Shown here in pieces: positions 16,906-38,668 of a DNA stretch of 64,000 nucleotides (within the stretch, counting starts at the first letter, position 1; the number at the start of each line of letters is the position of its first letter). The notes under the pieces are model-generated. The model ran no database searches and was not told the origin of the DNA. It was given only the letters and a program-made list of their open reading frames with translations. A program made the position numbers and the translations under genes. Origin of the DNA: Zancudomyces culisetae HAW-14-8 (taxonomy: Eukaryota > Fungi > Kickxellomycota); contig JBNJNM010000008.1 in the NCBI GenBank assembly GCA_052426225.1, forward strand, positions 682,001-746,000, written 5' to 3'.

Positions 16906-18711
16906 ATTTACCTTTTGCATCTATTTGCATCTGCATCTTTTGCATCATCTTTTTTTTTTTTTTTTTGCATTCTTGTACCTTTTAGTCATATCTCAACTAT
17001 TATTTAGCCTCACGAATACTTTTTCCTTTTATTTTTCTTTTAGCATTATTCATTTCTTTTCGATTCATAAAAATAGGCTTGTAAACTTTTTCTACTCATA
17101 AAAACTATATTTTTTATGTCTCTTTCTCTTTCTCTTTCTCTTTCCACAAAGTGTATTGCACTACCAGAAACGTTTTGCATTTTTTTGGTAACAGCTGAAC
17201 AAAAACTTTTGAGCTCATAAATATTGGAATAGGGGAATGCCTAGCAATTCAGAAATTGTACTATAAACAGTATACTCCAAAGCTATTTGATGTATAGTGT
17301 ATGGTGGATAGAGGATAGTGGGTATCCTATAGGTTTTTTATCTGCCTTTTGTGAGTTTTATTTAATAAATCGAGTTTATAAAAATAAAAAATAATAAAAA
17401 CACATCATCATTACTCAGATGTTCCCAAACACAATAATGCAAATCGGAATTTTCTTTAGTTTCTCATTGTTTAAGCAACAGCGAATATTGATGATGAATA
17501 CGGAATACTCAAACATAACATTCAATTTTTAACCGAACCATAATAAAACATTGGCGGAAAAATGTGAATCTGGATCCCCCCAAAAGTTACTATTAAAATA
17601 CCGCCAATAGTTTGATTGATATACATGTTGTTGTCTTTGGATGCATGCTTTTCGCTTTCCGCTTTTCGTTTTTGGTTTTTTGTTTTTGGTTCTAAAATAA
17701 CAATTGTTATAAAACTGGATTAAACTATCATGTTATTAAGTAAACCAGGCATACCTTCGATGTAAAAATATATTTTACACCATAATAGCTGTTGTGTTGG
17801 GTTTTGAAATATGACTATTATTACCCCATTTGCTTTATCGCAAGATACCTTTTGTAATTTAAACAGCGTAAATTTTTTGCTGGCCAAAGAGTTTATCATT
17901 TGAGTTTTGCTGCTCATTTATTGAGTAATAACTATTTTTCATAGACACGTTGGCGTTTTCTTGAGGGGGAAAAGGAAGAGGAAGATCTAGATAAAGTCAC
18001 ATTGGACCCTGTATTGAACGCTATGTTTAGTGTCTAATCTAGAAACATCTACTTTTTGTTGCAAGTGGACGTGTCTGAACTAATGATAATAGCCACAGTT
18101 TACTTTTCATTTCATAACCGTCATCACTTTTCATAGTTTGAGCATTTTTAAAATGAAATAGCGTCCAAGTAGCATTGTACAAAACACTGTGGTCTTTTAA
18201 CTCATTAAATGATAATTAAAGTGGATTTTTATTTAAGAGCCGTAGATTAAAGAAAATTATTATTAAAACAACACCAAGATTGTGAGAGTGGATGGGTAAA
18301 ATCAACACAAAAAATAAGATTATCGCCACATTAGCTCATTATTACAAATTTATTATTAATATATCAATTATGATGAGAATTTTTTACATATTCAAAAAAG
18401 CGCAATTTATAAAATCAACATATACACTCCCAGAAACGTTAGATATAATAGGCACTAATACCTGATACACGTATCTAAAAAGTAAAAAAATGCTCAATTC
18501 AAAATTAAAAGGGATTTTCTAAGCTACTTGCTTCAGATCACATTCGAGTAAGACAACTTTTACTCGATGCTCTTGAAAGCTAGGGTATTTTCACCTTTCT
18601 AAAATTAGAACACCCTTACAACACTCTGTTAAAAATGCTACAAACTCGACTGTTTAATAGCGCTCCGAGAATATTATAGAAGAAGAAGTATGAAGGGAAA
18701 GGAGGATAAGA

Positions 18712-18718
18712 TATAAAA
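18712..18718 (+). promoter_or_regulatory. Candidate TATA box of the Tyr-rich secreted peptide gene
   Basis: TATAAAA about 170 nt upstream of ATG 18882, followed by an A/C-rich leader. Confidence 0.4.
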
Positions 18719-18881
18719 TGTTCAAAAGAAAACGTTGAGAGTAAAACTTTCTTTAAATATCAAAACAAAACAATACAAAACAATATAATACAAAAGCTAT
18801 CATTCCGATTTCCATTAGCATTAGTATATATCATTATTGCATTAGCTAACCTAAAATTTATTTAAAATCAAGTATCCAAAA

Positions 18882-19298
18882 ATGGTAAAGTCAACACTCG
18901 CACTCCTCACAGCCACAGTTGCCACATTGTCAGTAAATGCTGCAGCTAACCCAAGATCAAGATTAGCTGCTGGTTCTATGCAGCCACGAGTAGAACAGGT
19001 TCACGACCTTGGGAGATTTCCTCCACCTGCTCGTCCTGCTTTTAACAGACGCTTTGCTGCACCAGCTTACCGCAAGCGCGCTGAAGAAGAAGAGGATGTT
19101 CCAGTTGATGATTCTGCATCAGCCCAAGACGGTGCTGCTCAAGCTCAAGATGGTTCCGCCCAAAACTTTGATGCCCTAACAAATGGCAGTGACGAATTAG
19201 ATATAACCAATGACCGTTTCTGGTTTGGGTATTATAAATACCCATACTATAATTATGGATACTACAAATACCCATATTATAGTGGATATTACTGGTAA
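18882..19298 (+). CDS. Small secreted prepro-protein with Tyr-rich C-terminal repeat
   Basis: A-rich ATG context (CAAAAATG), hydrophobic signal peptide, RR and RKR basic sites, an acidic spacer and the tail FWFGYYKYPYYNYGYYKYPYYSGYYW. GC is elevated over the flanks. Confidence 0.8.
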   Translation: MVKSTLALLTATVATLSVNAAANPRSRLAAGSMQPRVEQVHDLGRFPPPARPAFNRRFAAPAYRKRAEEEEDVPVDDSASAQDGAAQAQDGSAQNFDALTNGSDELDITNDRFWFGYYKYPYYNYGYYKYPYYSGYYW

Positions 19299-19808
19299 TC
19301 TGCGATTTCTGAAAGTGCTTTTTACTTTATTTAGCCTTAGTACTTATGTTTATGATCAAGTTTTAGTGTTTTTTAAGCAAATAAAATCAAATAAGTTCAT
19401 ATAACTTTGCATAACCACCTTTCTCATGTGTTAGAAATGGTCGGTATAACACAGAACCTATGGTATTAGAAAACAGAGTGACCTTGTACACGTTAGCCTT
19501 TTTTTCTACGTAATAACTACTTTGGATTTACAAAAGAAACAAACAGTATCTTTAAATCTATGTCTGGTGAGTATGAGGTTCATAGTGAGCTAATGATAAC
19601 TTGAATTGATTGATACTGTGTAGGATTTTTTTTTATTGCTTGTCATTCATTTTACAATTCAATTTTAAAAGGCAAAAATAAAAACAAATGCAAAGTGTTT
19701 TTAGAAAGTCAAAATAAACAATTCAATGCTCTTATTTTATTAGTAATTTTTATTAAACATCTTTTATTAGCAAATAAACAAAAGATTAGGAAATAAATAA
19801 GACAAGAA

Positions 19809-20212
19809 ATGTTGACGCTTGGTAATCTTCTCTATGCCATAATTCTGTTTATTAACAGCGTGGTAATCCTCAACGAACAACGGTTTCTTGCCCGTATTGG
19901 TTGGTCCCAGCAAAATGTCATGATGGACTATAACAATTCCAACAGTACCAAAAACAAGATTATTAACTTGATTAGCGCGACCCGAACCGTTCTCAAGAGT
20001 AAGTCTTTCCTTTTAGCACACAAAAGATTCTTTCTATTGTTTTGATTTATAACAAAATGTGTATCCGCGAGTGGATTTGAGTGTGTGTTAATCTTGCAAT
20101 TCCCTTTTTGCTTTTTTTTTACCTTTTGGTCTAAATATTCTCGTTGTTTGTTATAGTTCCCCTAATAGTTGTAAATACCACACTGATTCTATATTCTCTG
20201 ATTCTTGGATAA
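19809..20212 (+). CDS. YOS1: Yos1/IER3IP1 ER-Golgi transport protein; intron ~19999-20156
   Basis: LGNLLYAIILFINSVVILNEQRFLARIGW...KNKIINLISATRTVLK, spliced to IPLIVVNTTLILYSLILG*. Confidence 0.9.
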
Positions 20213-20357
20213 AGCCATCTGATGCTAAAATACCATTCTATTTCAATTCTAAATACGAAAACAGCAAAAAATAAAGGAGAAAAGAACAACAGTCTATCTT
20301 GTATAAAAAGAAAAAAAAATCAAACCGAATTCTATCATAATTAACTATACTCAGCAA

Positions 20358-23300
20358 CTAAAGCCTACTCGTTAATATAATCTCAATTTCGTTAATGATA
20401 TTTACCAACAAACTAAAATCGGTTGAGCTGGATTTCAAATATTGATCCTGCTTGACACCAGTATAATTTCTTTGTTGGGATTTGTTTAGATTATTAGCGT
20501 TAATACTTGGAGAATTTACATTAGAGTCTATAGTACCACCAGCACTATTAGTACTATTAGTAATCCCATTACCGTTATAATAAATTTCCATAATCCAACT
20601 TTTCAGTTCAGTGACCAAATTAGCTCTTAGTAAATCCACAACAGCTCCATCATGGCAAAGAAGACCTATCCCATATGCCAGTACCAACTCCAGGACACCC
20701 TTAAGCATAATATTGATAATGTGGACCAGAATGAGTACGCCAAGTTGTTGCTCCATTTGTTGCTCAATGTTGACAGTTGGGTTTATTTTCACCGAATACA
20801 CAACTGTCTTTGGGTATATTTCATGACGCTCAGTAAATAGCTTGTCAATGTTATTTAGTATAAGTAACAAGGACGCATCCTCGTTTCTAGCATTCCCTGG
20901 ATTGCTACTACCACCAACACCGCCAACACTAGCAGCAGCGGCGGCAGCACTATTGAGATTACTGATGCTGGTGGTGATGCTCTTTGTTGACCCCGTTATT
21001 GATTTCAATCTCTCGTTATACAAGAACGAACGACTTTTTTCCATCATCATAGCATTCGCTGCCATTATTGGCGACGAATAGCTTGCTTGTGACAATCCAG
21101 TCTCGGTGGTTATTGTTGGTGATCGATTGTACATCATTTTAGTGCCAACATTCATATTGGACAGCGTTCGACTAACTGGAATCATATTGTTGGGCGATTG
21201 AGTTTGTTGGCTCGAGTTTCTTAGCTGATAAAATCCAGGGCTTTTTAATGCTATTGCCCCTGAAGTTGAGACTGGTGGTGATTTAACCATTTCACTTTTA
21301 TTTCCTATCAATAACAATTCACGCTGCTGTGCTTCATGTACCCTGGTTTCATATTCGTTAATTACACTGGAGGTTCTTCCAACGAGTCCTTCTCTGTTGC
21401 TTTGCTGATGACTATTACTCTCCCCAAAGACAGTTAATACCAAGTATTCCAACACATGGAAGTAGGTTCGCAGTTTAAATAGATTTTTAGAGGTATCTGC
21501 AGCTAAGCCTAAACCTGATCCCGCGTCCAAACTCTGCAGTCGTAAGATTTCAGCTTCAATACTGTAGTAGTAGTAAAAGTTTGCCATCTCGTTACCCACC
21601 GTCTTTACAAATACCATCAGTATTTCATCCACACATTTCCTGTACAACACTGTCAAACTATCTTCATCGTACTTTAACACATCTAGCTCTGCCTTCTGTT
21701 CGTTCCTACCTTGTACATCACCTGTTTTCTTGGGATATATATTCAATGTTGCAAACAATTCCATACTATGACCACTACTACCATTGTTGCTATTGACTAT
21801 GTCTTTAGATTTTATTGATTGCTGGCATATCAGATATACATTTTTGATTATTCGCGCCTCCAATTTCATCAGAAACCTCGCAAGAATCAATAGGTTGGCT
21901 GGATTACTATAACACTGGGCGTTGGTTTTGGACATTTTTCCCGTCCCAACAACCTTATGATGATTGCTGCTCTTTACTTCTGAGGATTTATTCACACCAT
22001 TCGCTTTATCTTTCTGTTTTTCACCTATCTCTGCACTGTTAATATGCACACTATTAATATTCAATGCCTTATATATAGATTGTGGAACCCATTCCCTAAA
22101 AAACTTGTCCAGCATTCCATTCAGCATCTGAATCGCTATTTTTTGATAGTTTCCTTGCCCATTGTTCTCATAAAAGCGCATGATTATGCCCACTATGGGA
22201 ATAAACTCTAGCTGTATGTTGTGGATTAACTCCTTTTCCAACTCCCTAACCACTTGTTTCGCGTCAATCTTCTCATCCTCTTTCCCAAGAACCATGTTAT
22301 ACATTAGTCGGAGTCCCCATTCCGACCCCTCCTCCAACTCTCCATCTGCTTTTTCTTGTTTTCGTTCTTGTTTTTGGCTCCCATACGTACTATTACCAGC
22401 AGCGCTTCCTTTGGCTTTATACATCACGTTGTCAAAGTACAACATCAAAGTGTCTAGCACTTTAACCAGGCGTCTACTCATCATCGACTCGTACTGGTTC
22501 CGTACCGTTCGTCCAATTTTACCCTTTAATCCTCCATATTTCAGCAAAATAGGATACTCCTGCATCTCTGTTATAACTTCGTTAAGAACTACAAGCGACC
22601 TACTCTCTTCTCCCTCCCCTTCCTGCCACAATCTCTTTTCCAGTTTCTTTTCGTCATACAACTGTTCCAATTCCTCACAAAACGTTGAAAATCTATGCTG
22701 TGCATCAACCACCGCTTCACGAGTCATAATTTGCCATCCACTCACCATTCTTGAATCTACTTTCTCTTCCTGATCACCAGCTTCGAGCTCATGTCGTCCT
22801 CCAATCTGTTCGTCCTCGTCACCCAAGAGTCCGCTGCTTTTTGGTGGTGAAAACTGATTCAAAAATCCTTCAATCACTGTATTCCAATCCTTTAAATATG
22901 CCTTTCCTTCTCTTGGAGATTTTTTCTTCATTCGGTTATACTGATTCTCTATGTACTCCTTGTACATAGTACTGGCCCCACCTGTAGATATCTGAATCAA
23001 CAGTTTTGAACAATCCACTGCCTCCTCAACAGTACTTCCCTCGTCTCTCCACCGCCTCCACAGCTCCCGTTCTACTTGATCCACCAGTTTCTCCACTTTT
23101 ATTATCCCCTCTTTTCCAACTTTTCCATACCGAGAAAGTAGCGGTTGGGTTCGCGCCCACAACTCAGCTGCTGCTTTATAATTCCCTTCTGCCACGCTTG
23201 CATGTAGTTTTTCTGGTAAATCCATAACCATTTGCACCTCAGACACGAATTTTTGCTCTTTTTCCAAACCCAACAATTCTTCTTTCCCAGGTCTCAATTC

Positions 23301-24106
23301 GCTTTCTATGTGTTTGCTCTTCCTGCTGATTTCCTCCATCCGGGATTTAATGTATTCCATTCTTTTCCCCATATCTTGCGCACTTTTTCGCATTTTCCCC
23401 AATGTATCCGTTGCCCCAATAAACTTCCCATAGTTTTCATATACTATCGTTTTCATTTCGCTTTCCAATTTCTGAATATCTATCAAATTTATTTCCAGAA
23501 TCGGTATTTGCGTTTATTATACCATTATATGTTACTGGATATTGTACAAATACTTCTCAGTGTTATAAATGTAAATTTATTTGAAAAGAATACTATACCT
23601 TTGTTGAAGCTATTTACTTGGGATAATACCTCTGCGGTGTTCTTTTCCGCCAATACACCCGCAATATATCTTTTCCACTCAAACTTTTCACTGTCTACTT
23701 TTATCACAAATTGATTTTAGTTATGTCTATAAAATGGTAACGCTCTCTATAGCTAGAAATAATAGGTCAATTGGTACTTGCCCAAGTTTAATTTATCTGA
23801 TTCCGGATTCCTTTTCTCGACTATATTGCAGTAACAATGATTTGGTTATTTCTGGATACTTTTCGATGCACTTTCTTATACTCTACTCTTTAAAGAACAT
23901 AGAAACTACACTCTGAATTGCCGCAGCCCAGTGCTATAAAAGCCTGGCTCACCCTTACCTTGCGCTCTTTCGTTTTTACCCGTCTCATTCTTTTTTTGGC
24001 TTCCATGAGTTTCGGAATAAAAATCCTTTAACATTGTCCTAGCAGCCCTCTTAGACAACATTGTTTGTGCATCTCCACCGAACTTCGGTGTACCACTCTC
24101 GCTCAT
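20358..24106 (-). CDS. VPS51: GARP/EARP complex subunit Vps51 (3 exons)
   Basis: RAARTMLKDFY (exon 1), DSEKFEWKRYI (exon 2) and DIQKLESEMKTIVYENYGKFIGATDTLGKM (exon 3) match the Vps51 N-terminal signature. Confidence 0.85.
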
Positions 24107-24566
24107 TTTCTCTTTGCCTTGATAATCTTACACTTCGTTTTTTTTTGTTCCTGCTTTTAGTTTTTGCAATTGTGTTGAGTTTTTGAATTCTTTTCTGCTT
24201 TCGATCAATTCGAGATTACTTCTTTGTACTTTTGGATATTTGTATAATGTATTTCTGTTTCGTAGGTTTTATTACTCTTTTTTAGTTGGCAAAGCTTGGT
24301 AGCACTACTTTTTGCCGATTTTGTGGTTGAGATGCCAACCTGCTATTTACACTTGTTTTGCTAGCCAATTAGCGAATTTAGCGAAAACTATTCTGGGTTT
24401 TCACCAATACACTTATGGAACAATTTTTTATTGATATTTTACAGATATGCTGAAACTATAAAAAGAAAAAAGCACTATAGTTACCAATATGTTGGCGTAG
24501 GTTTGTGAAAAGCTGCAGTATAAAGGTAAAGCTACGTGTAAACGAATGCTTCCAAAGCAGATCTAA

Positions 24567-26284
24567 TTACACGTCTTTGTCCACCACAGTTATTTTTTTG
24601 ATGTTTGCGTAGTACACAGGCGCAAAAGCATCATCTGAGTGTGTGATTACCTCCCAGTCATCTCTATTTAGTTATTTATACAAGTTCATGGTTCAGTTAT
24701 TGAGTTTTAGTGGGCATGTGATGACTCTTTCCTTCTGAATCAAAACATAAATATACAGGAATGATTAAGCAATCCATATACGAATAGCACCAGACAACAT
24801 AGCTCCATACTCGGACAACCTGCTATTTTATAGAGTAGAACTACATGTATAAACAGGACCCGCTCTCTTACATTATCAATTTCTTCTTGTATAATGGACA
24901 ATCCAGTGTGAAAGATTCGAACTCACCCCCCTCCCCACATATATGGGCGCCATACTTTTTGTTCTATTTTTTTTTAGGTACAAAGTTCAAGCATGTAACA
25001 CAGATGAAAGACGAACACCCGACATAAAATTCGTTAAAAATCGTAACTACATAACATTTAAATTACCAGTTCAACCAGCTTTGGTCGCATTTCTGAAAGC
25101 GTTTTGCATAAATCATTTTTACCCAGCCCTATTTGGTCCAAAAAAAAAGTTTAAAGTACGAGAAGTTGTACAATAACTGCGGTGTATTAAGGTACCTGGC
25201 TTCCAGAGGTACTCAATTCAGATACCACAAACAATAAATAATAAAAAAAGATATAGAGGAGTATGACATACCTATCGATGCGACTTTTATGAGTACTGCA
25301 CACATTCTGCTATCAATCATTTCATCCAACAACTCCAGCTGATCTCTGTTCCATAGATATGCTAGCATCTGCAGTCCTAAACGGTCGCATCTAAAAAACC
25401 GATATTTACAAATTTATCACTCATTTTTTTGGTTATCTATGCTCCAAGAGTCCACTTTTCTTGTGAAGTTGAGTACAATAATATCAAAACTAGAGCTTTA
25501 ATCGCTATTCAGTCCCATTAACCTCTGTTTTGGTGATAAAAAATATCATAGAAACCCCAGTCAAAGGTCAAAAACTAACAGAAAAAACTCTTTTAAATAA
25601 AACAAATATAATAATTAATAAAAACTTTCATGTTTCTTACATATTTTGAACTCTGTTTGCTTGATATGTGGAAAGAATTGCTCCAACTGAAACACCACCG
25701 ATATCAGGATGTTCTTTAAGCACATTCTTCAATAGCTCGTAGACACTTTCCGCCTCATCGTTAATCGTCTCTGTATACTCGAGTTCCTGGTTTATTGGCT
25801 TGCCTTTGATTTCGACTTGGTAGAGAGGGAGTTCCATACATTCAGCAATGTATCTTACCATACTTTGACCAACCGTCTGATACATAAAACTATCTGTCTC
25901 ACCTATTAAACAGAATTATTTTATCATTATCTTTAGTGTTCAATTGTATTTTATTTTATATGAAAAGTACGATTTCTGAGAAATACCTTCTTTATCTGGC
26001 TTTGCATTAGCAAGTGCAACGATTGTATGCCCATTTTCCACGCATTTTAGCATGTTAAACACACTGTCCTTTCCACCACTATTTCGTGCATTTGCTTATC
26101 TGGTTAGTTTTTGAATTCGGGTATAAGGTTGTATGGCCTTTATTGAGTTAAAGCTACTCGAAGCACAGCCTATTTGAACTTTGGAAACTCTGAGAATTGC
26201 AGTCGTGTGTAGCTTGCGTGGTGAGTTTGTTTCGTATTTTAAATAAAAATTTGTTTCATACCTTACCAGGGCTACTACCTTCAT
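24567..26284 (-). CDS. DPH6: Diphthine-ammonia ligase, short form (~250 aa, 7 exons)
   Basis: Spliced MKVVALVS|[66 protein letters not shown] and [11 protein letters not shown]...VDKDV*. Confidence 0.9.
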
Positions 26285-26646
26285 TTTCAAGTATCTTAAG
26301 TTGAGAATCTGCTGAGGTCGATTTACGGTTTTTAACTTCAAGGCTAGTGAATTTTAGTCACAACAGAAATACCTGTCTCTTTCTCTCTTCAATCAAATTT
26401 GATTGAGCAAAAAAAATTTTGAAACTGTATTCCATTTTGGTTTAGCAGGGCTTGGAACTAATTTGTCAAGTTTTGAGCTGATACAAATCACATAGAACGC
26501 AGGTTTACTGAATCTTGCACTTGTATTATTGAAGTAAGCTAGAAACAACGTGGTATTCGTCTAAAAACTAAAAATAAAAAGAAAAGAACCAAACAAGCTG
26601 AAAACCATATATCTGGAATCCCATCAAAACGCAAGAAAGAAAAAGC

Positions 26647-28710
26647 TTAAAGCTTGGATGAGCCAGAAGGTCCCTTGAGTGTAGGACCAATGTACTTGTC
26701 AAAGAAGCTCTTACGAATAGCATCACCAGTTCCGTCTCTGTTTAGTGGCTCCTCCAAGGCTCTGGCCATGTAATCTTCGTAAACTTTTCCATCCTCTCTA
26801 CCCAAGCTTGAATTAAGAGTTTCGTCTGGAACCTTCAGTGCATCAACTAGAGGGACGGCAATGGTTCTTGCTGCCTTGATGCTATTCAAGTATTCTGTGT
26901 TCAATGCTTCAATGAGTTCGCGGGTAACTGAGGCTTCCTTTGGCAGGGCGTAAAGCTCACCAGTATTTCTAGTCAGGAAAGACAAGGCGGAGATGCAATA
27001 CATTGCATCCAGGGCTGGTCTCAGTGGAGAATTTGCAGGAAGTTTTTCAATGTGTTTGCCAAAGTACAGGCAAACAATGAATTCAGCATGGGCAGTACAA
27101 ACTGTTTGAGCGGTAACAAGGAAATCTTCAAATGGTCTTTTTTCAACATAAACTTTGGTGGCAAGCTGTTGAACCATTACAGCAAATCTGTATGCAAGAA
27201 TATCAAGAAGGAGTTGCTTGCTCTTGACAATTTCTGATGGGGATCTATTGGCCCAGGTATACAACTGTGCGGCAGATAGACGGTTACCCTTATTGTAGTA
27301 GCGGGTAAGAGCGTTTGAGGTATCGTTTACACCAACGGATTCACCACAGGCAATGGAGTTTGCTGTTTTGATCAAATATCTAACTGTTTGCTGAGCCAAC
27401 ATATAGTTGTCACCCTCCCAGATAATATTTGGATAGTTATCTGCAAAGTACTCATTTAATCCTGAAAATTGAGAAAATCCGTGTCCACCACACAAATGGC
27501 GGCAAGTATCTACCCCGTAAATGGCGGTTTCTGATGACCATCTCTTCAAGCCACAGCTAGATGCGTGCATTTCCTTCAACAGACTAAAGTCACCTTCTTC
27601 GATGGCTGACATACATCGCTCATATTGTTCGCGGAACTCATGAGCCATTCCCAACAATGCGTATGTCTTTGCAACTAATGGAATAACACGGTATTGTACA
27701 ATACCATAATCCAATACAGGTGACTCTGGTTTTCCTGCTTCGCCAAACTGACGTCTTACAGATGCATATCTGACTGCAACAGTGACAGCTTTAGCGAGTA
27801 CGTGACCCATTCCTGCGGCAATACTAGTTCGTACCTGGACCATGGTACTGTAAGTAATTCTTGGATCTATTCCTTTTGGCCGAGTCACCTTTCCATCCCT
27901 TGAAACTTGAATGTATCTTTGGAGCAAGTTAAACCTTGGCACTCTTACCTTATCCAAAGACAAGAATCCGTTGTCCATTGTGTTAAAACCAAACTTGGGA
28001 CCAATATCACCCACATGAACACCTGGGAATGGCTTATGATCCTCCATTGATCTGATGGGGACAATCAATGGGAATACACCGATATGCTTGCCCTTGACGT
28101 AAAGTTGTGCCATAACAATGGCATGAGTGGCACCAACGCCCAATGTTCCTATCCACCACTTTGTAGCTGTCAAGGTTGGCATATTGAGCTCAAACTCATC
28201 AGTTTCTTCTATGAATGTTGCTGTTGTCTCTATTCCGCGAACATTGGAACCGTGTCCCATTTCAGTTTGAGCATAGCATCCAATAATTCTGTAATCCAAT
28301 GTAGGTTCAAGGAATGCCTTCTTTTGCTCTGCGTTACACTGATTTTCCAACGTTGTGGTAAACATGCTACGAGACAGTGAGTATGGGAGAGGTATTCCCA
28401 AAATCTGTGTAATTGCGCTAAATTCATCCTTTGTTATTTTTTTCTCTCTGAAAAGCTGAACCAACCTGAGCTCAATTTTGTATGCATGATCAAATTTTTC
28501 AACTCTGCTCAAGTTGTAAAAATCTCTCAAGTCGAATATCTCTGGCTCAGCACGAATAACCTGAAGTGCCTTTTCTCTCATCCTGGAGTAGCTATCTCCA
28601 TTGATAAAGACATCCATTTCACTGCCCGGAAAATTGGCCTTTTTTCTCTCCTGAGCCAGTGAGTATGCAGTGTTTGGCTCTGACTGTTTCAAATGTGTTG
28701 GAAATCTCAT
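26647..28710 (-). CDS. ACOX: Peroxisomal acyl-CoA oxidase (intronless)
   Basis: GCYAQTEMGHGSNVRGIETTA, KWWIG, GDIGPKFG, CGGHGF, WEGDN (catalytic Glu) and a C-terminal PTS1 (-SKL). Confidence 0.95.
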   Translation of the reverse strand: MRFPTHLKQSEPNTAYSLAQERKKANFPGSEMDVFINGDSYSRMREKALQVIRAEPEIFDLRDFYNLSRVEKFDHAYKIELRLVQLFREKKITKDEFSAITQILGIPLPYSLSRSMFTTTLENQCNAEQKKAFLEPTLDYRIIGCYAQTEMGHGSNVRGIETTATFIEETDEFELNMPTLTATKWWIGTLGVGATHAIVMAQLYVKGKHIGVFPLIVPIRSMEDHKPFPGVHVGDIGPKFGFNTMDNGFLSLDKVRVPRFNLLQRYIQVSRDGKVTRPKGIDPRITYSTMVQVRTSIAAGMGHVLAKAVTVAVRYASVRRQFGEAGKPESPVLDYGIVQYRVIPLVAKTYALLGMAHEFREQYERCMSAIEEGDFSLLKEMHASSCGLKRWSSETAIYGVDTCRHLCGGHGFSQFSGLNEYFADNYPNIIWEGDNYMLAQQTVRYLIKTANSIACGESVGVNDTSNALTRYYNKGNRLSAAQLYTWANRSPSEIVKSKQLLLDILAYRFAVMVQQLATKVYVEKRPFEDFLVTAQTVCTAHAEFIVCLYFGKHIEKLPANSPLRPALDAMYCISALSFLTRNTGELYALPKEASVTRELIEALNTEYLNSIKAARTIAVPLVDALKVPDETLNSSLGREDGKVYEDYMARALEEPLNRDGTGDAIRKSFFDKYIGPTLKGPSGSSKL

Positions 28711-31700
28711 TTTTGCTTTTTTTTAGTTTATGCCTTGAATACCCGTGTATTTTTTGCGTTGTTTAATAACCCTCAAAGTGACCTTTTTTGTAATTATATA
28801 TTGTTAGCGTCAATATTCAGATATACGATTTTTGTATGAAGGGTTTGGTGGAATAACTTGAGGCTTTTATATGGCACTGCTTTCTTAATTTATTGCTTAT
28901 TTTGTTTTATGTTGGTTCCTGCACATTCTGGTTTGAATTTCTACAAAGTGTGCCTTATTCGATGCACATTCACATAATTATTTTACAAAAACGATACTAA
29001 AGCCGAACTCTGATTTTGTTTCACATGTGAAGAATTGGTCAATCCGCTTTTTTTTTTCTGTGCCCATTTACCAAACAACATTGCGTCGAAATTGAGCGGC
29101 AGCTTATGCTAAATTGTATCTTCCATTATTTAAGTGTATTTTCTCGTTTTTAAACGAATCAAAAAATATCAGGAAATGGCGGAAGTCTGGTTGTGTTTGA
29201 GGGTAATATGAAATGTTTGCAAGATAAAAGAAAACACTAAATGTGTCTATCAAAACCTAAAACTGTTTTGAAAGAAAAGAAAAAAGGAAAGAAATTCCTT
29301 TGTTTCTGTTCTGACAAAAATCCGCATCAGTCGTACCACAAAAAAACGCATCAAATATCCTTTTGATGCATCGAACAGCAACAAAACCAATTGAACATGA
29401 CCCCTGAGATTTATGGATCCTAAAGTTGTTGGTTGTCTACAGCTTAAAAATGCCAGTAGACTATATAGCCAAACCAGTTAAGTTTAAACTACTTGGACAC
29501 TGGTGTCACCGTAGCTGGGTTGCTGCAGTTTCTTGCAAAAAAGGAAAAAGAGTCGTTTTTTTTTGTGCTTCACTCAAAAATGGCACAGAGAAGTAAATCG
29601 ATATGACTAGGATTTTCCCTTTATCACGTGCTTAGAATAAATAATAGAGACCATGTGAGAAAGTAGGCTCTGGCCCTCCAAGCAACCTAGTGGTGGTATA
29701 CTTTTTGACTATAGCCAGAATATGACATTCTTTGGTTTGTTATATTGGTATCCCCAATTCTTCAAGTTGAGCCAACTCGTTTATTTTGTACCATTTATCA
29801 TAGCTTCCCCGTAGCCTGGATGTAACGCCATAAGGCCATTGCTTAACTCGTTTCAAAATGCATAAAGTTATTTTTGGTGGAATGGCAACTTGTACATGCA
29901 GAAAATTACATGTGAAAACCGATTTTGAAGTATGGCGTGAGCTTTGGGTTTTTGTTTTAGAAAAATATTTGGTCCTATGCATTTATTTTTTTATTTTTTT
30001 TGTCATATGCGTTTGTTATTGTAATTTTATAACATTTTTTTATCTGCTTATACGTAAGTTGTTTCAGCTAATTGAATGTAAAAAAAAAGAGGAATTGTAA
30101 GTGGGTTGCACTTTGCACAAAAGCTATATGAATAGCAAAGTACACTGGAAAACCTGTTAGTGAGAGTTTCGGCCTTTGTAGCTTTGAATAGTTGGATATA
30201 AAACAGTGGATACATATAATTGAACGTTGAGGGGGGGTGATTGTCAAAAATTTAGACGCTTCCCTACACCAACATGTAGTAAATAGTTTAGAAAAAAAAT
30301 AAAGGCCAGTTCAACAGCGTTCTAGTAAATACAACGCCACTTACATTTAGGCTTATGAGGTTCACCCCCTCCTCTCCCTCCCTTTCCGATATATGCTGTA
30401 CCGATACCTTGCATTTTTTTTAAAAAAATTTAAAAACATAATGATTTCGCCAGTTTCTGACTTGGTAAACCTCACTCTTGACATTAAAAAAAAATGAGAG
30501 CCAAGGAGTAAAGTTAAATCAAGACTATTACTGATATTTCAAAACTTCAGTACTTGTTAACATTTTTCAGTATTATGCGTGATAGAATAGTGACCTAGCC
30601 CATATCATGAAACTATGAGCTCAGTTTGCCATATTAATACCTACCTGTACTGCGACTCAATTCGTGAATTTAGCACAGTGCAAATGTTTGAGCATCTTCA
30701 TCGTGAATAAGGTTTTGAAAGATTCATGAGGATTCGATTTGAATATTGTTATGTTGGCTGTCCTGATTTGTATTACACACTAATAAGATCCACAGCCGGA
30801 ATGGGGCCATAGATATTCCAAAACGTGTAATGAGTAGAATTCCATTTACACGTTGCATAACTCTCGTTTCTTGTGTGTGATTTCCAACTATAAGCTAAAA
30901 GTTGCAATTACACTCCTATATCTTTTTTTAAAGCAAACGTAATTTAACTACCAAGAAGCGCACCACGTGATAGGTTTGTGCTAACCGGAACTGTGGCAGA
31001 ATTTGCATTCTGCTCACTGTATAACCACAGATCATGGAAATTTTGTACAATGTTAAACAAAGTGTATCATAGCTACCAGAGATCGCTACAAGAGACAAAA
31101 CGGGTTTAGGTGAAACCCTGCCACTCTGTTCATACCCACCAATATTATAGACCTCAGCACTACTCACCTATGGTGTTACAAACGCTGGTATTATAAGGTA
31201 GATATTTGAAAGTACATAAAGGGTAGAGTATCTGCTTTGTATTTATATTTGTAAGCGTTATTAACTTTTTGGGTTTCAACACGCTTGTCAAACTTGCATC
31301 TTCAAAATATTATTTTAACTCTTTTTAGATGTCAAACTGACCCGGATAGATTTGGGACAAAGATATATCTGCAAAAGCAAGTATTGATAGTAGCATAGGA
31401 TGTACCACATCACTGCTTGGTGTAGTTTGATTCCATTGTTAATAGCGAGCCTCCCCTTTCCTTTCCCCTCTCTTGGGTTATTCACAAGCATTTATACATA
31501 CCAAATAAAAAAATGTACTGAAACAGACCTAAGTATAGAATGCAAAGTATGCAGCAGCACACGTGCACTACGCGCTAAAAAGGGCATGGGCTAGGTCGCT
31601 TTCAGAAACTTGTGAATTATGTTCAACCAGCAAAGCAAATACAACCTGCTCTATTATATGTGGGGGTTTTTGTTTAAAATAGTTAATTTCAAAGTATTTT

Positions 31701-32327
31701 ATACTAAATTGATTGGTGAAAAGTTAAGATTTTGCTTTTTAGAAAAAAAAAAGTTATAATTGAGCCAACTGTTTCTGACCACAGGTAGGAGATTCGCTGG
31801 AATAAAAATAGGAGAATTAATAAAAAAAACAAAACAAAACAAAACGTTCTGTAACACTACGTGATTAACTTGCAAATGAAAAAACTGGCAATTTCACCAT
31901 ATAGGAAACAGGAGCATTATAATTGTAAACAATATATTAGCCAATTTTACAAATCCATGAAGCTAAATAAATAAAAATAACGTAATCGATAGTTTGATTT
32001 ATTTTGATTTTCAAAATTGCAAAGTATTAGAATTAGAATGAGTGGAAGTCAATCTATAAAAAATAAAAGCTAAACAGGTGGATTAAACATTTTTCAATAT
32101 ATTTAACATGTTTTTTGGTAGAATTGAAATTTAATCGCTGCAAGTGGACTAGCGATATATTTAGATAAACCGAAACCCAGACTTATTTACAACTAAAATT
32201 AATCAACCGGTGTTTCTATTGGAATGCCGCAAACACACGTAAAAGGTGTTGAACACAAAGAATTTAGGTAAATTGGTTGAGCAGTTTTGTAGCTGGATGG
32301 TTTGCTCTGCAAATTAGCAGAAAACAT

Positions 32328-32404
32328 TACAGATCATAGAGTACAGATTACAAATTGCAGAATACAGAATACAAACTACGTACTGCATACTGCATACTAC
32401 ATTA
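32328..32404. repeat. Degenerate 7-bp tandem repeat, ~11 units
   Basis: tacagat catagag tacagat tacaaat tgcagaa tacagaa tacaaac tacgtac tgcatac tgcatac tacatta. Confidence 0.7.
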
Positions 32405-33267
32405 AAGAGTTTCTTCGTCAGCTTCCTAGAGTAAAGCTACCAGTCTTTAAAAAGCAACAAAAAAAAACATATGTATATCTACTTTTACTTTGCTAAGCAG
32501 TTCACAAAACAGCAGCAATATAAGCGGAATATAGAATTTTCCTCAACTAACGCCGAAAAGATTTGTCACCACACTCAATTCCCAGTCACCTTTAAAGCAA
32601 ATAGCCAACGCTACAGGGTAGATAACATACATAAAATCTGTAAGAATAGAATATAAAGGTATTCATATAAAGGTGGGATACAGACTTGGAGAGTAATAAG
32701 ACTAAGTGTTGGTTTGCGTATATAAACAACTGGCAAATTAGAAAGAGACTAATATTGTTTCTTTTACCACCTAGGATAATACATGAACGAGTAAATGTAT
32801 AGTATATAAAAAATAAATATACAGAAGAGGGCTTTAATTCGGATAGCGAAGCACTAAAAATAATTTTTGAGAAAAGTAGTCACAATAATTTCAATTCCAT
32901 ATTGACATTTTGTTTGTGAGAAAGATACAGTTGGTAAAGTGTACTGAGTATATATTCACTTTTCCGATAAGAGTATTATAAAAAAGGGAAAATTCAACTA
33001 GATCGAATTTGTAACATACAAAAAATATCGATAAAGCTTTGATACACAGTACCACCTTATTACTAAGAGTTGTTCATTTTTACTAAAAACAGAAAAACTA
33101 CTTTACGGAAAGAGATAAAAAGTAGCTCTTTCAACATCAAAGAAGAAAAAATAGGGAAAGTAAAGAAAAGCATATAGATAGATTCGCTGATTCTATTCAT
33201 CACATAACCCTTTGAGAAATATACATACCCGCAACATCGAGCTTGTGAAACAAAAAACACATAAAAT

Positions 33268-35631
33268 ATGCAAAGTATGATCGATAAACATATCAAACAA
33301 GAAATTGGTTTTAATCGGGAGGAGACCAAGTCGATGGTTAGATACATGTACATACGCAACCATGGGATAGAGGGCTTACCATCATTTTCAGGCGATGAAA
33401 AGGAAGATGGAGCAGAATGGTTAGAGTTGTTTGAGGATTACGCCATGAAAAATGGATGGATAGACAAATCTTATGAAGCAAAGAATGATACTTTAACAGA
33501 ACCCGAAGACCAAGCATCAAAAAACTCGTTGCTTATGGAAAAACTAAAAGAAAAGCTAAGAGGTGAGGCAAGGAAATGGCTAGAGACCAGGGACAATCAG
33601 TGTATCTCCACCTGGCGGGAATTCGCACAAGAGTTTTTGGAGGCATTTGGAGGAGCGTTACATTGGACAGACGCAATTAAAGAATTGGCATTGTTAGACT
33701 ATGAAGAGAGCGGCAAAGGTTCGGCGTATGTGTTGGGACAGAGGTACTTAAAGCTCTGGAGAAGAACCAAATATGAAGATATGGGACAAGAGCTATATAT
33801 CTCAATGTACATGGCACGGCTACCAAACGAGATTCAACGGAAACTTGTAGATAATGAGTATACAGATCTTAAAAACCTCATAATGGACGCTGAGGAGTGT
33901 GAAAACGAGAGCATTCCACAAAGTACAGGATTGCGCGAAAAGGGAATTTGTAGAGATGTCACTGGTTACACTACCGAAAGGTCTGCCATGCAAGAGCCAG
34001 GCTTTGATGGTGGGAATGACGAAATGAGTATACAAGAGAGCACATACACAGATTTAGATAAACAGTTTGGACACATGCACATCAATGAAGCAGTTAAACT
34101 AGATCTCAGAGGGATGGCTAGGGATGTAAATGTGAATGTTGGTCGACCAAGCCTCGATAATTATACACGTCAGCCCGAAGACAGGTATTCGTTCAGCAAT
34201 TATACCAATAAAAATGATCGTAAAGATGTGTCAGCTTTTGAGTATTCTCGGGGCTACCCTGCTAAGGGTTACAGGAACTCACCAGACATGAATGACGATG
34301 ATTCTAGATATCATAATCGTGGCGTAACCAGCTATACCACTCGAACATATGGACAACAGGGGAGTTCTGAAAGAGGTGGGTTGGTTGGATTTTATCAAAA
34401 CCCACAGGAAAAGCAAAAGTACAAGAATCGACATGCAACGTCTAATTTTTCTAACCATGCGAACCGTCGGGATACAGGAGGAAGTGAAAGAGGATACTCG
34501 TTTTTAGAAAGAAATGGGTCCAAAAGGGGTACAAATCCATACTTTACAGAGTCCAAAAATAATTATAGACAAAGCTCTGGCCCTAATGGAGGGGGGTGTA
34601 TTAATAACAGTTTTAACTCAGAAAGTGTTCATGGAGCGAACTTTGGAACCAGATTCAGTATTGACTCTGAACAAAAGAGAACAAGTATAGAGGAAAACGA
34701 ATCCATGGGTCCAAAAAGAAGCAATAGCGGAACAGATAAGAGTTTATTTGACCATCTCAACACAAGGGTGTTTGTAAAATCTGCAAGTGGTGCTAAAAAC
34801 ATCATGTCAGGGGGTATCGGTGGTAATAGTAGCAGTGGAAGTAGCAGAGCTAGCACCTATTTTGGTACTGGTAATACAAAGGACGTGTCAATGGACTTTT
34901 ACAACCAGCAAATCAGTTTGCTAGTTGGAGCATCTAGTGGAGGCGATTTTAGGACTACTAGTACCAGCAGAGCCACGTTTATGAACGGAACTGATAGAAA
35001 TAGTTGTGATGCCTTTTTATTCAAAAATGAGGATAATAATGTTAAGGAGCTAACAAGGGAGCTTGACGGAGATAAACAAAAAGACCTGTCCGCAAATGGA
35101 CCTAAATATAGCAATAGAAGCAGTAGCAGCAGTGCAAGTAGTGATACATTATACTACTCTAACAGCAATAGACAACAAATTCCTACATTTGTAAATAGCA
35201 ACGACGGGCTTGTATCACAATCCACTGCAGTTACCTTGACAAAAGCAAATGAGAACGTAGAAGGCCGATTTGGCACAAATGACTCTTTTTCTACGGATGC
35301 AAGAAAGATGAGTTTTGTTGAAGGTGCCGAGTTTCCTGAAAACACAATGATTTGTGCGTTTTGCAAACAGATTGGCCATCATATCAAAACATGTCCGCAT
35401 CCTAGGTGTAAAGCTAGTGTCCTCTATCCTGGAAACAAAAATAACAGTGCACACAACAGGTCACAGCCTTTGAATAGAACGAATAATAGCATTTCTAACC
35501 AGTACACTTTGCGAAAACCTAGTATTCACGATCGTTTTAATGGCAGTAGATTTACTGATAGCCTGAACATGGGTACCTTTAATCGCAACCAACCCCCACC
35601 CTTTATCGAAAGATCGACATCCTACTACTAA
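33268..35631 (+). CDS. Stand-alone Ty3/gypsy-type Gag-like protein (capsid-like domain plus CCHC zinc knuckle), probably domesticated
   Basis: Capsid-like motifs in aa ~33-212: LPSFSGDEKEDGAEWLELFEDYAMKNGW, KLRGEARKWLE..TWREFAQEFLEAF and YMARLPNEIQRKL..DLKNLIMDAEECE. CX2CX4HX4C knuckle CAFCKQIGHHIKTC at 35353-35394. No protease, RT or integrase follows. Confidence 0.75.
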   Translation: MQSMIDKHIKQEIGFNREETKSMVRYMYIRNHGIEGLPSFSGDEKEDGAEWLELFEDYAMKNGWIDKSYEAKNDTLTEPEDQASKNSLLMEKLKEKLRGEARKWLETRDNQCISTWREFAQEFLEAFGGALHWTDAIKELALLDYEESGKGSAYVLGQRYLKLWRRTKYEDMGQELYISMYMARLPNEIQRKLVDNEYTDLKNLIMDAEECENESIPQSTGLREKGICRDVTGYTTERSAMQEPGFDGGNDEMSIQESTYTDLDKQFGHMHINEAVKLDLRGMARDVNVNVGRPSLDNYTRQPEDRYSFSNYTNKNDRKDVSAFEYSRGYPAKGYRNSPDMNDDDSRYHNRGVTSYTTRTYGQQGSSERGGLVGFYQNPQEKQKYKNRHATSNFSNHANRRDTGGSERGYSFLERNGSKRGTNPYFTESKNNYRQSSGPNGGGCINNSFNSESVHGANFGTRFSIDSEQKRTSIEENESMGPKRSNSGTDKSLFDHLNTRVFVKSASGAKNIMSGGIGGNSSSGSSRASTYFGTGNTKDVSMDFYNQQISLLVGASSGGDFRTTSTSRATFMNGTDRNSCDAFLFKNEDNNVKELTRELDGDKQKDLSANGPKYSNRSSSSSASSDTLYYSNSNRQQIPTFVNSNDGLVSQSTAVTLTKANENVEGRFGTNDSFSTDARKMSFVEGAEFPENTMICAFCKQIGHHIKTCPHPRCKASVLYPGNKNNSAHNRSQPLNRTNNSISNQYTLRKPSIHDRFNGSRFTDSLNMGTFNRNQPPPFIERSTSYY

Positions 35632-35901
35632 AATGCCACGCCAAATATGTCACTAATATGTTTACTGTTGTTCTGTACTAACAACGCTCCTCTAACCTCT
35701 ATCTTCTTCCTTCATTCTCTCATTCTTTCGTCATGTTATCTTTTTTTTTATTGTTTTTTTATTGTGGTGTACTTTAGAGAATACACAGAACTCAGCTCAT
35801 AGTTTGTTCGTTTTTTTGTTGTTTTTTGATTCAAAATATGTACCAACTAAAAAGGCTATTTTCTTCGTTTAGAAAAAAATGGTGTAAAAAATTGAAACGG
35901 G

Positions 35902-38229
35902 TTACACAAAATGAAAGATGCTCTGAACCCCATTATATATTATTTGCTTTGTCTCTGGAATATAGTGATGTGTAGTGAGCTTGATGGCCTCTTGAGCGAC
36001 TAGGCCCCCCATTACCGCCGCAATACTATGTACTTGAGCTCCTCCAGATCTAACAAACTCGTTAAAAACTTGAGCATAAGCTTTTTTCTCATTTAAGGTA
36101 GTTATCAACGACTCCATGTTGATATATTCATCGGAAGAAACCAGTCCAGAGAATGACTGGATGAGTAAGCAGTCGAAAATAGCCCGGAATCTTTGTCTGT
36201 CCTTCAAGAGTACATTTTTGTCTTGCTTAACTTCACCAGGGTATCGATGATATATACTTTTAAATAGCAAAGCTCCCTGTAGTGCCACTGCGGCCATCTC
36301 ACCTATACCAAGCTTGTCAATCGCATCCTCCTCATCGCTTTGATCTTCGTAATGCAAATCTGTTTGATCAGCACCGAATTGCTCAGTATGACGATTATTT
36401 TCATGTTCCTTTATAACTGCTATGACCTTAGGGTCTACTTCAAATTTGTTTGCGTTAATCACGCTGATATTTCTACAGTTTTTGCAAAACACCTCCGCTT
36501 GTTCAAAAGAAATAGCCAGCTCTTCCGCGTGTTCTGCCTTCTCCGTCTGGTTCATATTTGCCAGGATTTTCAAAACATAACTGTACACAGCTTTTGCATC
36601 CACTCTAGCCTTTTCTTTGTATACTTTTTGGATTTCAACATATCTCTTTGTATCTGAAAACATATCAGGAAGAGTACCCACTAGTGGAAGCTTCCGTGAT
36701 CCCTCATCTTGGTTTTCAAGAAACATCTTCAGAGCCTTTACCAGAATCCAAAACACTTTGTTCTATAGCGCATACCAAAACGTTGAGAAAAACCACCAGA
36801 AACATCATAAACAAGATATTTTTAAACAGGAGAATATATTTGAACTTACGTATATTTTGGTTTGTGTATCTGCTAAATTTACTGCATCAGCCATATTAAG
36901 GATTTCTACTATGTGTTCAGGGATTTTATACTCTGTAATAAGCCTTAGAACATTATTCTCTGCTTCCTCGTAATTTTGGCGATCAAAAGTTCCCTTAGCC
37001 TCCTTGATCTGAGCTGCAAACTCCTTTTTCTGCTTGAATGTTTGTGGGATATTGCCTCCGTTCTAGTTAAAACAAAGATAACATGGTTTTAGATCCGGTC
37101 TTACAAAAGAAAAGTACATCCAGCAACCAATAATCGATGGGTTATTTTAAACATTTCAAATGGAAAGCCATAAATTATTTACCTTTGATTTCCATTCAGC
37201 AATGAACTTGATCAATAAAACCAGGTATGGAACATGACTATGTTCCATTTCGTCAAGTGCACTCAGATCCACAGAGTCTACGTATTCTGATAACTCTGCA
37301 AAGGGATCGCATATCCTCAGATCGTCGATTTCTTCGCTATGGCTTTCAATGACTATTTCAAGCAAAATAATACGTAAGATTATACAGTATTAGACTCAAA
37401 AGTGGATAGTATATTTAAAACTAAAGGATCCAAGGATTTGTTACCGCAATGTTCAGGGATAAACGACTTGGAAAATCCAAAAAACCCGTTTGTTTGGCAA
37501 TTAATTAACGGAATCCTTCGTTTGGTGCATTTGACGCCGACTTTTTCAACCGTAATCATATCGAAATTACAAGAAAGTACTAAATCGTACCCGGAAAACG
37601 TATTTTTCTCTTGGTTAATATACTCAAAGACGTCCTATCCCCATTGTTCAAATTATTAGTTCTAAGAACAAGCATATCTGATATTTCATATAAATATAAT
37701 AGTATAAGGAAATGGAGACCTACGCAATGCATGCCCTGGCCAATTACGGAGGGATTCAGTTGACAAACATTCCTCGCAATCGTTTCTGCCAAGCTTTTTC
37801 CAACATCATCCCTTGCTACAAAATAGTTTGTAGCTACATCGTTGCTGGTAACAATTGACGAATCTACAATCAGAAATTCTCCTATGCCTACATTTGCACA
37901 ATTTATATACACATGTACATATGCATTCTACATTAATAATGTGTTATTAAATAAAATCACACACAAATACGACAAGGGAAACTATGTAGATTTTAAGTGT
38001 TACCAGTAAGTACAAGATTTTTTAAAACCTCAGAGCCCAACAGTCCAGAACCCAAAACCAAAACTTTGCTATTATATAACTGCCTTTGACCAGATAGATC
38101 CCATAAACTAGTAAAAAAGCACAAACAAACAAACAAGCTTTGTCAGAGTTATTTACACAACATATTGTTAAAACCGACTTACCGGATTTGTCTGTCATAT
38201 CTATCAACTCTTATGTCTTCAGACTTCAT
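35902..38229 (-). CDS. NAE1: NEDD8-activating enzyme E1 regulatory subunit (APPBP1/ULA1), multi-exon
   Basis: Spliced MKSEDIRVDRYDRQIR|LWDLSGQ, GSEVLKNLVLTG, DLRICDPF, EHSHVPYLVLL, LPLVGTLPDMFSDT and GGLVAQEAIKLTTHHYIP. Confidence 0.9.
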
Positions 38230-38668
38230 TTTTTTATTCGGATATGATGACATTTAGAAAAGAATATAGTTTCCCACAATTTTTCTATGCTAGTTCATGG
38301 AACAGAATTTTTTTTTTTTTAGAAAAAAGAGCAGCTTTGAGTGTGTTAGTGTCTGTTTCTGTTTCTATTTCCTCTTTTTGCTATCTGCCTTTGTGTGTTT
38401 AAATACGAATTCTAGAATATTTTGGTATTTCATTTACTGCGGAAACTCAAAATTAAATCAATACCCGTAAATCAATTCCAACTTTATGATTACTAAAATA
38501 ATTGCATGATTAGTTAGCACTGAAACCTAAAAAAAAAGAGAACAAAGGAAAACTTTTTAATTTATTTTTTTATAGTTTGATTTGGTTTATTAAACTGTCA
38601 TTGTTAATATTAAGCATTGGTAGCTACAAAAATAAACACAAGTAAACAGAGCCTTAAATATCCTTGAG

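Follow-up and report, generated by a model that had tools for sequence, protein, structure and literature searches.

In animals, the co-option of gag genes has been studied well, with Arc, PEG10 and PNMA as examples; mammalian Arc is not known to have a zinc knuckle. In Ty3, gag is followed by pol and the two are flanked by long terminal repeats (LTRs), with the nucleocapsid (NC) following the capsid (CA) after a short spacer, and an N-terminal P-x-F-x-G ... W/F-L motif marks Gags of the Ty3/gypsy type. Restriction factors of related origin include p22, which is encoded inside Ty1, and mouse Fv1, which comes from the gag of ERV-L. Described here is a gag-like open reading frame (ORF) of 787 codons in the fungus Zancudomyces culisetae HAW-14-8, an early-diverging insect-gut symbiont of mosquito larvae (Harpellales, Kickxellomycotina). 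It lies in a 64,000-nucleotide stretch of contig JBNJNM010000008.1 (assembly GCA_052426225.1, positions 682,001 to 746,000), which is called the window below and to which all positions refer. A eukaryote-wide survey lists 14 gag co-option events, three of them in fungi and all of these in Dikarya (Wang & Han 2021, PMC8321522). The three fungal genes, Crtg12, Crtg13 and Crtg14, are single-copy, derived from Ty1/Copia or Bel-Pao elements, and conserved above the family level, with synteny and expression data (PMC8321522). Among the later papers searched, none was found to describe a Ty3/gypsy-type gag co-option in fungi.

Like Arc and dArc1, animal genes from a Ty3/gypsy gag, the Zancudomyces ORF is gag-like and occupies a host locus on its own, with neither pol nor LTRs, and Arc is its best match in the PDB, over the end of the N-lobe and the C-lobe, with the Arc_capsid_dom profile matching as well; unlike Arc, to which the similarity is weak (E about 5e-3), the fungal protein has an added low-complexity insertion of 450 amino acids (aa) and a knuckle, and the gene is known from the sequence of one species alone. 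The order of a capsid-like domain and then a CCHC knuckle is shared with PEG10 and with some RTL (SIRH) and PNMA proteins, none of which gave a match at E<=10 in the PDB search; the fungal gene differs from these also in having no protease remnant or frameshift ORF, and its origin, in a fungal lineage, would be an independent one. With Ty3 Gag3 it shares a match to the Ty3_capsid model and a single CCHC knuckle C-terminal to the capsid domain, but it has no pol or LTRs, and its spacer is about 480 residues long. Like Crtg12, Crtg13 and Crtg14, it is a fungal gene apparently derived from an LTR-retrotransposon gag; unlike them, it is Ty3/gypsy-like, belongs to the Zoopagomycota (Harpellales) and has been found so far in Z. 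culisetae alone. One possible mode of action is that of Ty1 p22 and mouse Fv1, in which a Gag-like protein joins the capsids of active elements and poisons them; the Z. culisetae genome is rich in retroelements.

Gag co-option is already known as a kind, and the present locus is a candidate for a further case, at present a well-founded candidate rather than a demonstrated domestication. The explanation favoured here, which we hold to be somewhat better than an even bet, is that a single-locus gene descended from a Ty3/gypsy-type gag has been kept intact by Z. culisetae as a protein-coding gene. Host retention of a gag-derived gene is plausible from the sequence evidence set out below.

Gag-like features of the protein

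A preliminary description of the window, made from the letters and their translations, had presented an intact, uninterrupted ORF with capsid-type motifs and a perfect zinc knuckle. Translation of 33268..35631 (+) does give an ATG-initiated, intronless frame of 787 codons with no internal stop, and all of the quoted motifs are where they were said to be: LPSFSG at aa 37-42, EWLELFEDYAMKNGW at aa 50-64, LRGEARKW at aa 97-104, TWREF at aa 115-119 and RLPNEIQRKL at about aa 184-193. To call these motifs capsid-type is a matter of interpretation, and the profile matches to capsid families that back it fall below curated thresholds. The hallmark L-R-G-x-A-x-x-W ... T-W-x-E-F stretch of the capsid-like core lies at aa 97-119 (coordinates of the features are collected in Table 1).

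With the whole protein as query, Retrotrans_gag was matched at E=5.7e-4 (20.5 bits, cut-off 24.1; aa 95-155) and Ty3_capsid at E=0.023 (14.6 bits, cut-off 29.1; aa 94-210), and the four best matches in the PDB were all Arc (best E=0.048, 15.4 bits; aa 89-196). When only aa 25-240 were used, the matches were to Retrotrans_gag (PF03732; E=1.2e-4, 22.7 bits, cut-off 24.1; aa 95-180), Ty3_capsid (PF19259; E=2.3e-3, 17.8 bits, cut-off 29.1; aa 94-211 on profile positions 53-170 of 198), Arc_capsid_dom (PF21395; E=5.1e-3, 17.3 bits, cut-off 27; aa 91-125) and, in the PDB, Arc (E=5.5e-3, 19.7 bits; aa 89-196); these three Pfam families were three of the top four matches in the domain-only scan. All of the capsid alignments have one common register, in which aa 90-130 correspond to the last part of the Arc N-lobe and aa 131-196 to the C-lobe, and the stretch matched in the Arc alignment takes in the G-x-A-x-x-W ... 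T-W-x-E-F segment.

The CX2CX4HX4C pattern has exactly one match in the 787-aa protein, at aa 696-709 as had been noted; its chance expectation is 2.2e-5 (for a composition of 9 Cys and 15 His), and none of 20,000 shuffles contained it. The knuckle is C-terminal to the capsid-like core, and this order of capsid and then nucleocapsid matches that of Gag. The N-terminal part of the protein (aa 1-230) is acidic and helical, with an isoelectric point (pI) of 4.9, and the linker at aa 231-680, which is probably disordered, is rich in S, N, G, T and R (S 14%, N 10%, G 10%; grand average of hydropathy, GRAVY, -1.12; pI 8.6).

Because the three capsid models, each built separately, concur with the Arc sequences, the P-x-F-x-G motif and the knuckle, we regard Gag ancestry of the ORF as quite likely. 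A Ty3/gypsy-type (Metaviridae) affinity is probable; gag families of the Copia or Bel type were absent from the Pfam results for the protein. The Gag identity first proposed thus stands insofar as capsid families and Arc are the top matches, in one register, with significant E-values and with the knuckle downstream, but all scores are below cut-off in the profile search that had been suggested as a check (22.7 bits for Retrotrans_gag against 24.1, with zf-CCHC matched over its full length at E=0.11), and the fold models have low confidence values.

The solo ORF and its two versions

The gag-like locus clearly does not qualify as an intact LTR retrotransposon, that is, gag-pol flanked by LTRs. 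No LTR-like direct repeats of at least 20 nt were found in the 27-38 kb part of the window, no reverse transcriptase (RT), RNase H or integrase was found among the window's large ORFs, and the 270-bp gap to the stop of the neighbouring gene, NAE1, is too short to hold pol or an LTR 3' of the ORF; the earlier reading of a solo gag without pol or LTRs is borne out by these results. The upstream gap (28711..33267) contains no ORF longer than 98 aa and 28 small ORFs, none with a Pfam domain, and hidden pol or LTR remnants upstream were ruled out by the repeat search together with this Pfam scan of the small ORFs. No Rfam family and no tRNA was detected in the gap either, and the public annotation calls no gene there; RNA genes in the flanks of the ORF were ruled out likewise. 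No second copy of the ORF was found in the 64-kb window at the protein or the DNA level.

A second version of the locus is available in a public record. From 18558 to 38498, the window shows 98.4-99.0% identity with LSSK01001356.1 (assembly GCA_001969505.1), with 20 indels over 20 kb; the two are independently evolving versions of the locus, and the window could come from another isolate, another haplotype or a duplicated region. The public allele of the gag-like ORF is a called gene on that record, OMH79944.1 ("hypothetical protein AX774_g6636", Zancudomyces culisetae), and carries the UniRef name "CCHC-type domain-containing protein". Both versions retain the 787-codon frame, with no indel and no stop. 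Substitutions between them amount to 1.06% in the gag-like ORF (25 nt, no indels), 1.63% in the upstream intergenic DNA (11 indels) and 2.2% in the 3' gap (2 indels). Three host genes compared in the same way also have no indels: the Vps51-like gene, with 0.58% substitutions (synonymous to nonsynonymous 9:9, ratio of nonsynonymous to synonymous rates, dN/dS, 0.26), the acyl-CoA oxidase gene, ACOX, with 0.34% (7:0, dN/dS 0), and the last-exon ORF of NAE1, with 0.7% (6:0, dN/dS 0). At the flanking intergenic rate, 6.4 indels would be expected in the gag-like ORF and none is seen (P=0.0017), though the indel rate of AT-rich intergenic DNA overstates the expectation for coding-like sequence.

The 11 synonymous and 14 nonsynonymous changes in the gag-like ORF correspond to dN/dS 0.32, similar to the 0.26 of the neighbouring Vps51-like gene, and the synonymous excess has a binomial p=0.006 at equal rates. 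Because transitions dominate (20:5 over transversions in the ORF, 54:20 in intergenic DNA), the neutral expectation was recomputed with a transition bias of kappa=5.4, which gives p=0.063 for the excess and an omega of about 0.5; the dN/dS comparison, which the preliminary description had proposed as a check in related species, thus favours constraint under the simpler model and is marginal under the more realistic one, with 25 differences to go on. The placement of the replacements is suggestive and is more telling than dN/dS. The capsid-like core (aa 36-216) and the knuckle region (aa 690-715) are free of all 14, which has P=0.014 under uniform placement; the core does hold 3 of the 11 synonymous changes, and the low-complexity linker takes 10 of the replacements. 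This pattern, on a basis of only 25 differences, is suggestive of a constrained gene with a tolerant linker. The sequence is also far from every sampled Gag and yet forms a 2.4-kb open frame at 41% G+C, a combination not expected of an old neutral relic. Co-option by the host, as first suggested, is consistent with the frame kept in two versions, the dN/dS of 0.32-0.5 and the structured parts free of replacements, which together are suggestive only.

Possible role and alternative explanations

If the ORF has been retained by the host, its ancestor would have been gag in a Ty3/gypsy-type LTR retrotransposon (Metaviridae) whose protease, RT, RNase H, integrase and two LTRs were lost, while two Gag modules would have been kept: the acidic, all-helical capsid-like core (aa 36-216) and the CCHC knuckle in its basic tail (aa 696-787), with ~450 low-complexity residues rich in S, N, G and R separating the two. 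By analogy with Gag, the core would self-associate, and nucleic acid would be bound by the knuckle and the basic tail, and perhaps also by the linker with its many R, G and Y residues; the resulting RNA-protein assemblies, as capsid-like shells or as condensates, might package RNA or disturb the assembly of active retroelements, which abound in the genome. It is only from that analogy that we infer self-assembly, RNA binding or a role of the protein in the cell, and capsid formation or RNA transfer would be pure inference. Closed capsids like those of Arc or PEG10, condensates, and a dominant-negative restriction factor like Ty1 p22 or Fv1 may all fit equally. A first fungal exaptation of a Ty3/gypsy-type gag, in which core and knuckle on a prion-like linker build RNA particles or condensates for packaging, transfer or restriction, is put forward tentatively and as a whole is on the doubtful side. 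If true, it would add another fungal phylum (Zoopagomycota) and another element class (Ty3/gypsy) to the range of gag exaptation, and would provide a new architecture, with capsid and knuckle ~450 low-complexity residues apart. Z. culisetae is culturable, which makes the question of capsids or condensates open to experiment, and the locus is a lead of use for work on gag exaptation or on the biology of Harpellales.

Word-indexed database searches with the whole protein and with aa 1-230 gave no relatives, an exhaustive phmmer search with aa 1-230 against 1.84 billion representatives gave 0 matches at E<=1e-3, and scans for patterns in prokaryotic genomes, in metagenomes and in viral contigs came back empty. 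A cut-off of 1e-3 in 1.8 billion sequences is estimated to need a bit score in the low forties, so that a fast-evolving orthologue at 25-30% identity could escape phmmer. The 98%-identical public allele, OMH79944.1, was itself not returned by the homology searches because the representative of its 90% cluster is an unrelated 51-aa Logan peptide, and this clustering artefact, by hiding the allele, weakens the database negatives. (The 51-aa peptide is found on ~3-kb contigs from about ten ERR1473xxxx short-read runs, and these contigs resemble neither the gene nor the window.) An exact-protein look-up of the ORF had the genome record as its sole match, and no mention of OMH79944.1 was found in a literature search; RNA-seq for Z. 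culisetae exists (PMC12611240).

Against the favoured explanation weigh, besides the two limits on the statistics given above, several points of ancestry and of copy number. All of the Gag-family matches score below Pfam's curated gathering cut-off, and an unrelated helical family, LprI, scores alike on overlapping residues (E=9e-4 with the domain alone; aa 62-116, window 33451-33615). This match to a lysozyme inhibitor is most likely a false positive from helical composition, and it implies that the helical, charged composition inflates weak scores for the gag-like protein. The AlphaFold2 (AF2) models, which were run on single sequences as there were no homologues for an alignment, are all-helical and of low confidence (predicted local distance difference test, pLDDT, of 42 for aa 1-230 and 48 for aa 36-218), Foldseek against the PDB gave no match at E<1 (Arc came first at E=1.5 and is not counted as evidence), and the ~480 aa between core and knuckle are an atypical spacing for Gag. 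These observations, together with an exhaustive phmmer search that returned neither a Gag nor any other relative at E<=1e-3 and with the occurrence of CCHC knuckles in ordinary host proteins too, would fit a protein not derived from Gag at all: a fast-evolving, lineage-specific CCHC RNA-binding protein whose resemblance to Gag is due to chance or composition. We think this decidedly unlikely, given that three capsid models, each built separately, and the sequences of the Arc crystal structures converge on one set of residues in one order, that the hallmark G-x-A-x-x-W ... T-W-x-E-F is matched, and that capsid followed by knuckle is the Gag order.

Other points concern the possibility that the ORF is what remains of a truncated LTR retrotransposon specific to the lineage, without host function, of which only gag survived deletion or incomplete insertion and whose frame is open because it is young. 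Retroelements make up 3.03 Mb of the 26-contig PacBio HiFi assembly of Z. culisetae compared with 0.41 Mb of the Illumina assembly, as given in a 2025 long-read paper (PMC12611240). The annotated proteome therefore under-samples them; most of the ~3 Mb is absent from the Illumina assembly behind the database proteome, and missing paralogues in protein databases say little on copy number. Nor was an orthologue detected in other Harpellales. Synteny had been among the checks first proposed, and at ACOX-anchored loci no syntenic orthologue was found outside Z. culisetae: those of Smittium megazygosporum, S. simulii and Furculomyces boomerangus have other neighbours and no gag-like sequence. The test is a weak one, since ACOX is multi-copy in Harpellales (at least four paralogues in Z. 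culisetae, at least five in Furculomyces and a head-to-head pair in Smittium simulii) and with its orthology unsure it makes a poor anchor; the closest cross-species ACOX matches, in Furculomyces and Smittium, have ~65% identity. The substitution-based selection signal, marginal at p=0.063 under a realistic mutation model, would also suit a relic. This account nevertheless seems unlikely to us: the locus has no LTR, pol remnant or repeats, two versions 1-2% apart have the frame entire, free of indels and stops, the replacements avoid the structured domains, a linker of 450 aa between CA and NC is atypical of a recently active element, and three other Z. culisetae contigs (~45 kb) contain no gag-like sequence and no retroelement. 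Selection could hold the frame open on behalf of an element as well, if the ORF were the gag of a non-autonomous or gag-only retroelement mobilised in trans, with terminal repeats too short or too diverged to detect. That appears highly improbable, with no terminal repeats of at least 20 nt within 5 kb on either side, no tRNA gene in the window (a primer-binding site was not searched for), the same locus occupied at the same insertion site in both genome versions, and the 3' end of the ORF within 270 bp of the 3' end of NAE1. A gag-derived gene retained by the host remains the explanation that we favour.

Surroundings of the ORF

Table 1. Features of the gag-like ORF and its immediate neighbours (window positions).
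Feature	Position	Strand	Remarks
gag-like ORF	33268..35631	+	public allele OMH79944.1; both versions 787 codons
CA-like, all-helical core (putative), aa 36-216	33373..33915	+	opens with P-x-F-x-G...W-L...F-E motif
Best Retrotrans_gag (PF03732) profile match, aa 95-180	33550..33807	+	profile positions 5-90 of 97
Low-complexity linker, ~450 aa, aa 231-680	33958..35307	+	no Pfam family
CCHC zinc knuckle, retroviral spacing, aa 696-709	35353..35394	+	zf-CCHC (PF00098) profile 2-18 of 18, E=0.11
Basic C-terminal tail, aa 710-787	35395..35628	+	aa 681-787 have pI 9.6
Upstream gap, gene-less, common with divergent acyl-CoA oxidase	28711..33267		4557 bp; presumed promoter
3' gap to convergent NAE1 stop	35632..35901		270 bp; contains (CCTCTAA)n microsatellite
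Acyl-CoA oxidase (ACOX), peroxisomal, intronless	26647..28710	-	protein identical in both versions
NAE1/ULA1 (NEDD8-activating enzyme regulatory subunit), last-exon ORF	35902..36756	-	match to human NAE1/APPBP1

The position given in the preliminary description, between ordinary genes, behind a non-coding region of about 4.5 kb and with some 270 bp between the gag-like stop and the convergent NAE1 stop, is confirmed, the neighbours being ACOX and NAE1. The latter was identified through its last-exon ORF (E=5e-23 to human NAE1/APPBP1). Other large ORFs of the window encode a kinesin, the Vps51-like protein, Syf1, Ddi1, a GPN GTPase, a carboxyltransferase, a CTLH-RING protein, Sam50 and an SNase-domain protein. 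The G+C content of the gag-like ORF, 0.40-0.44 compared with 0.31-0.35 in the flanks, resembles that of other coding regions of the window. Its codon usage and its G+C at third codon positions (GC3) are in line with host genes (relative synonymous codon usage, RSCU, r=0.82), but codon usage was dropped as coding evidence, as intergenic DNA (0.77) and an off-frame reading (0.71) score nearly as high.

At 2223-4177 (+), two adjoining ORFs with a ubiquitin-like domain and a retropepsin-type Asp_protease (E=7e-44) form the Ddi1-type gene, an ancient host gene with a retroviral-protease fold which is ordinary in eukaryotes and has no relation to the gag-like ORF. The upstream gap (28711-33267), in which no feature was detected, is long for so gene-dense a window and, apart from the 270-bp 3' gap, is the most diverged part of the 20 kb compared. 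A 177-bp indel at window position 31320 is present in the public record and missing from the window; it is unique, not being found elsewhere in the compared loci, and was ruled out as a transposon, its junctions having no inverted or direct repeats and no transposon signature. On the 3' side, the (CCTCTAA)n microsatellite at 35688-35702 has five more units (35 bp) in the public record, and is probably located in a 3' untranslated region shared by the two convergent genes, or between them.

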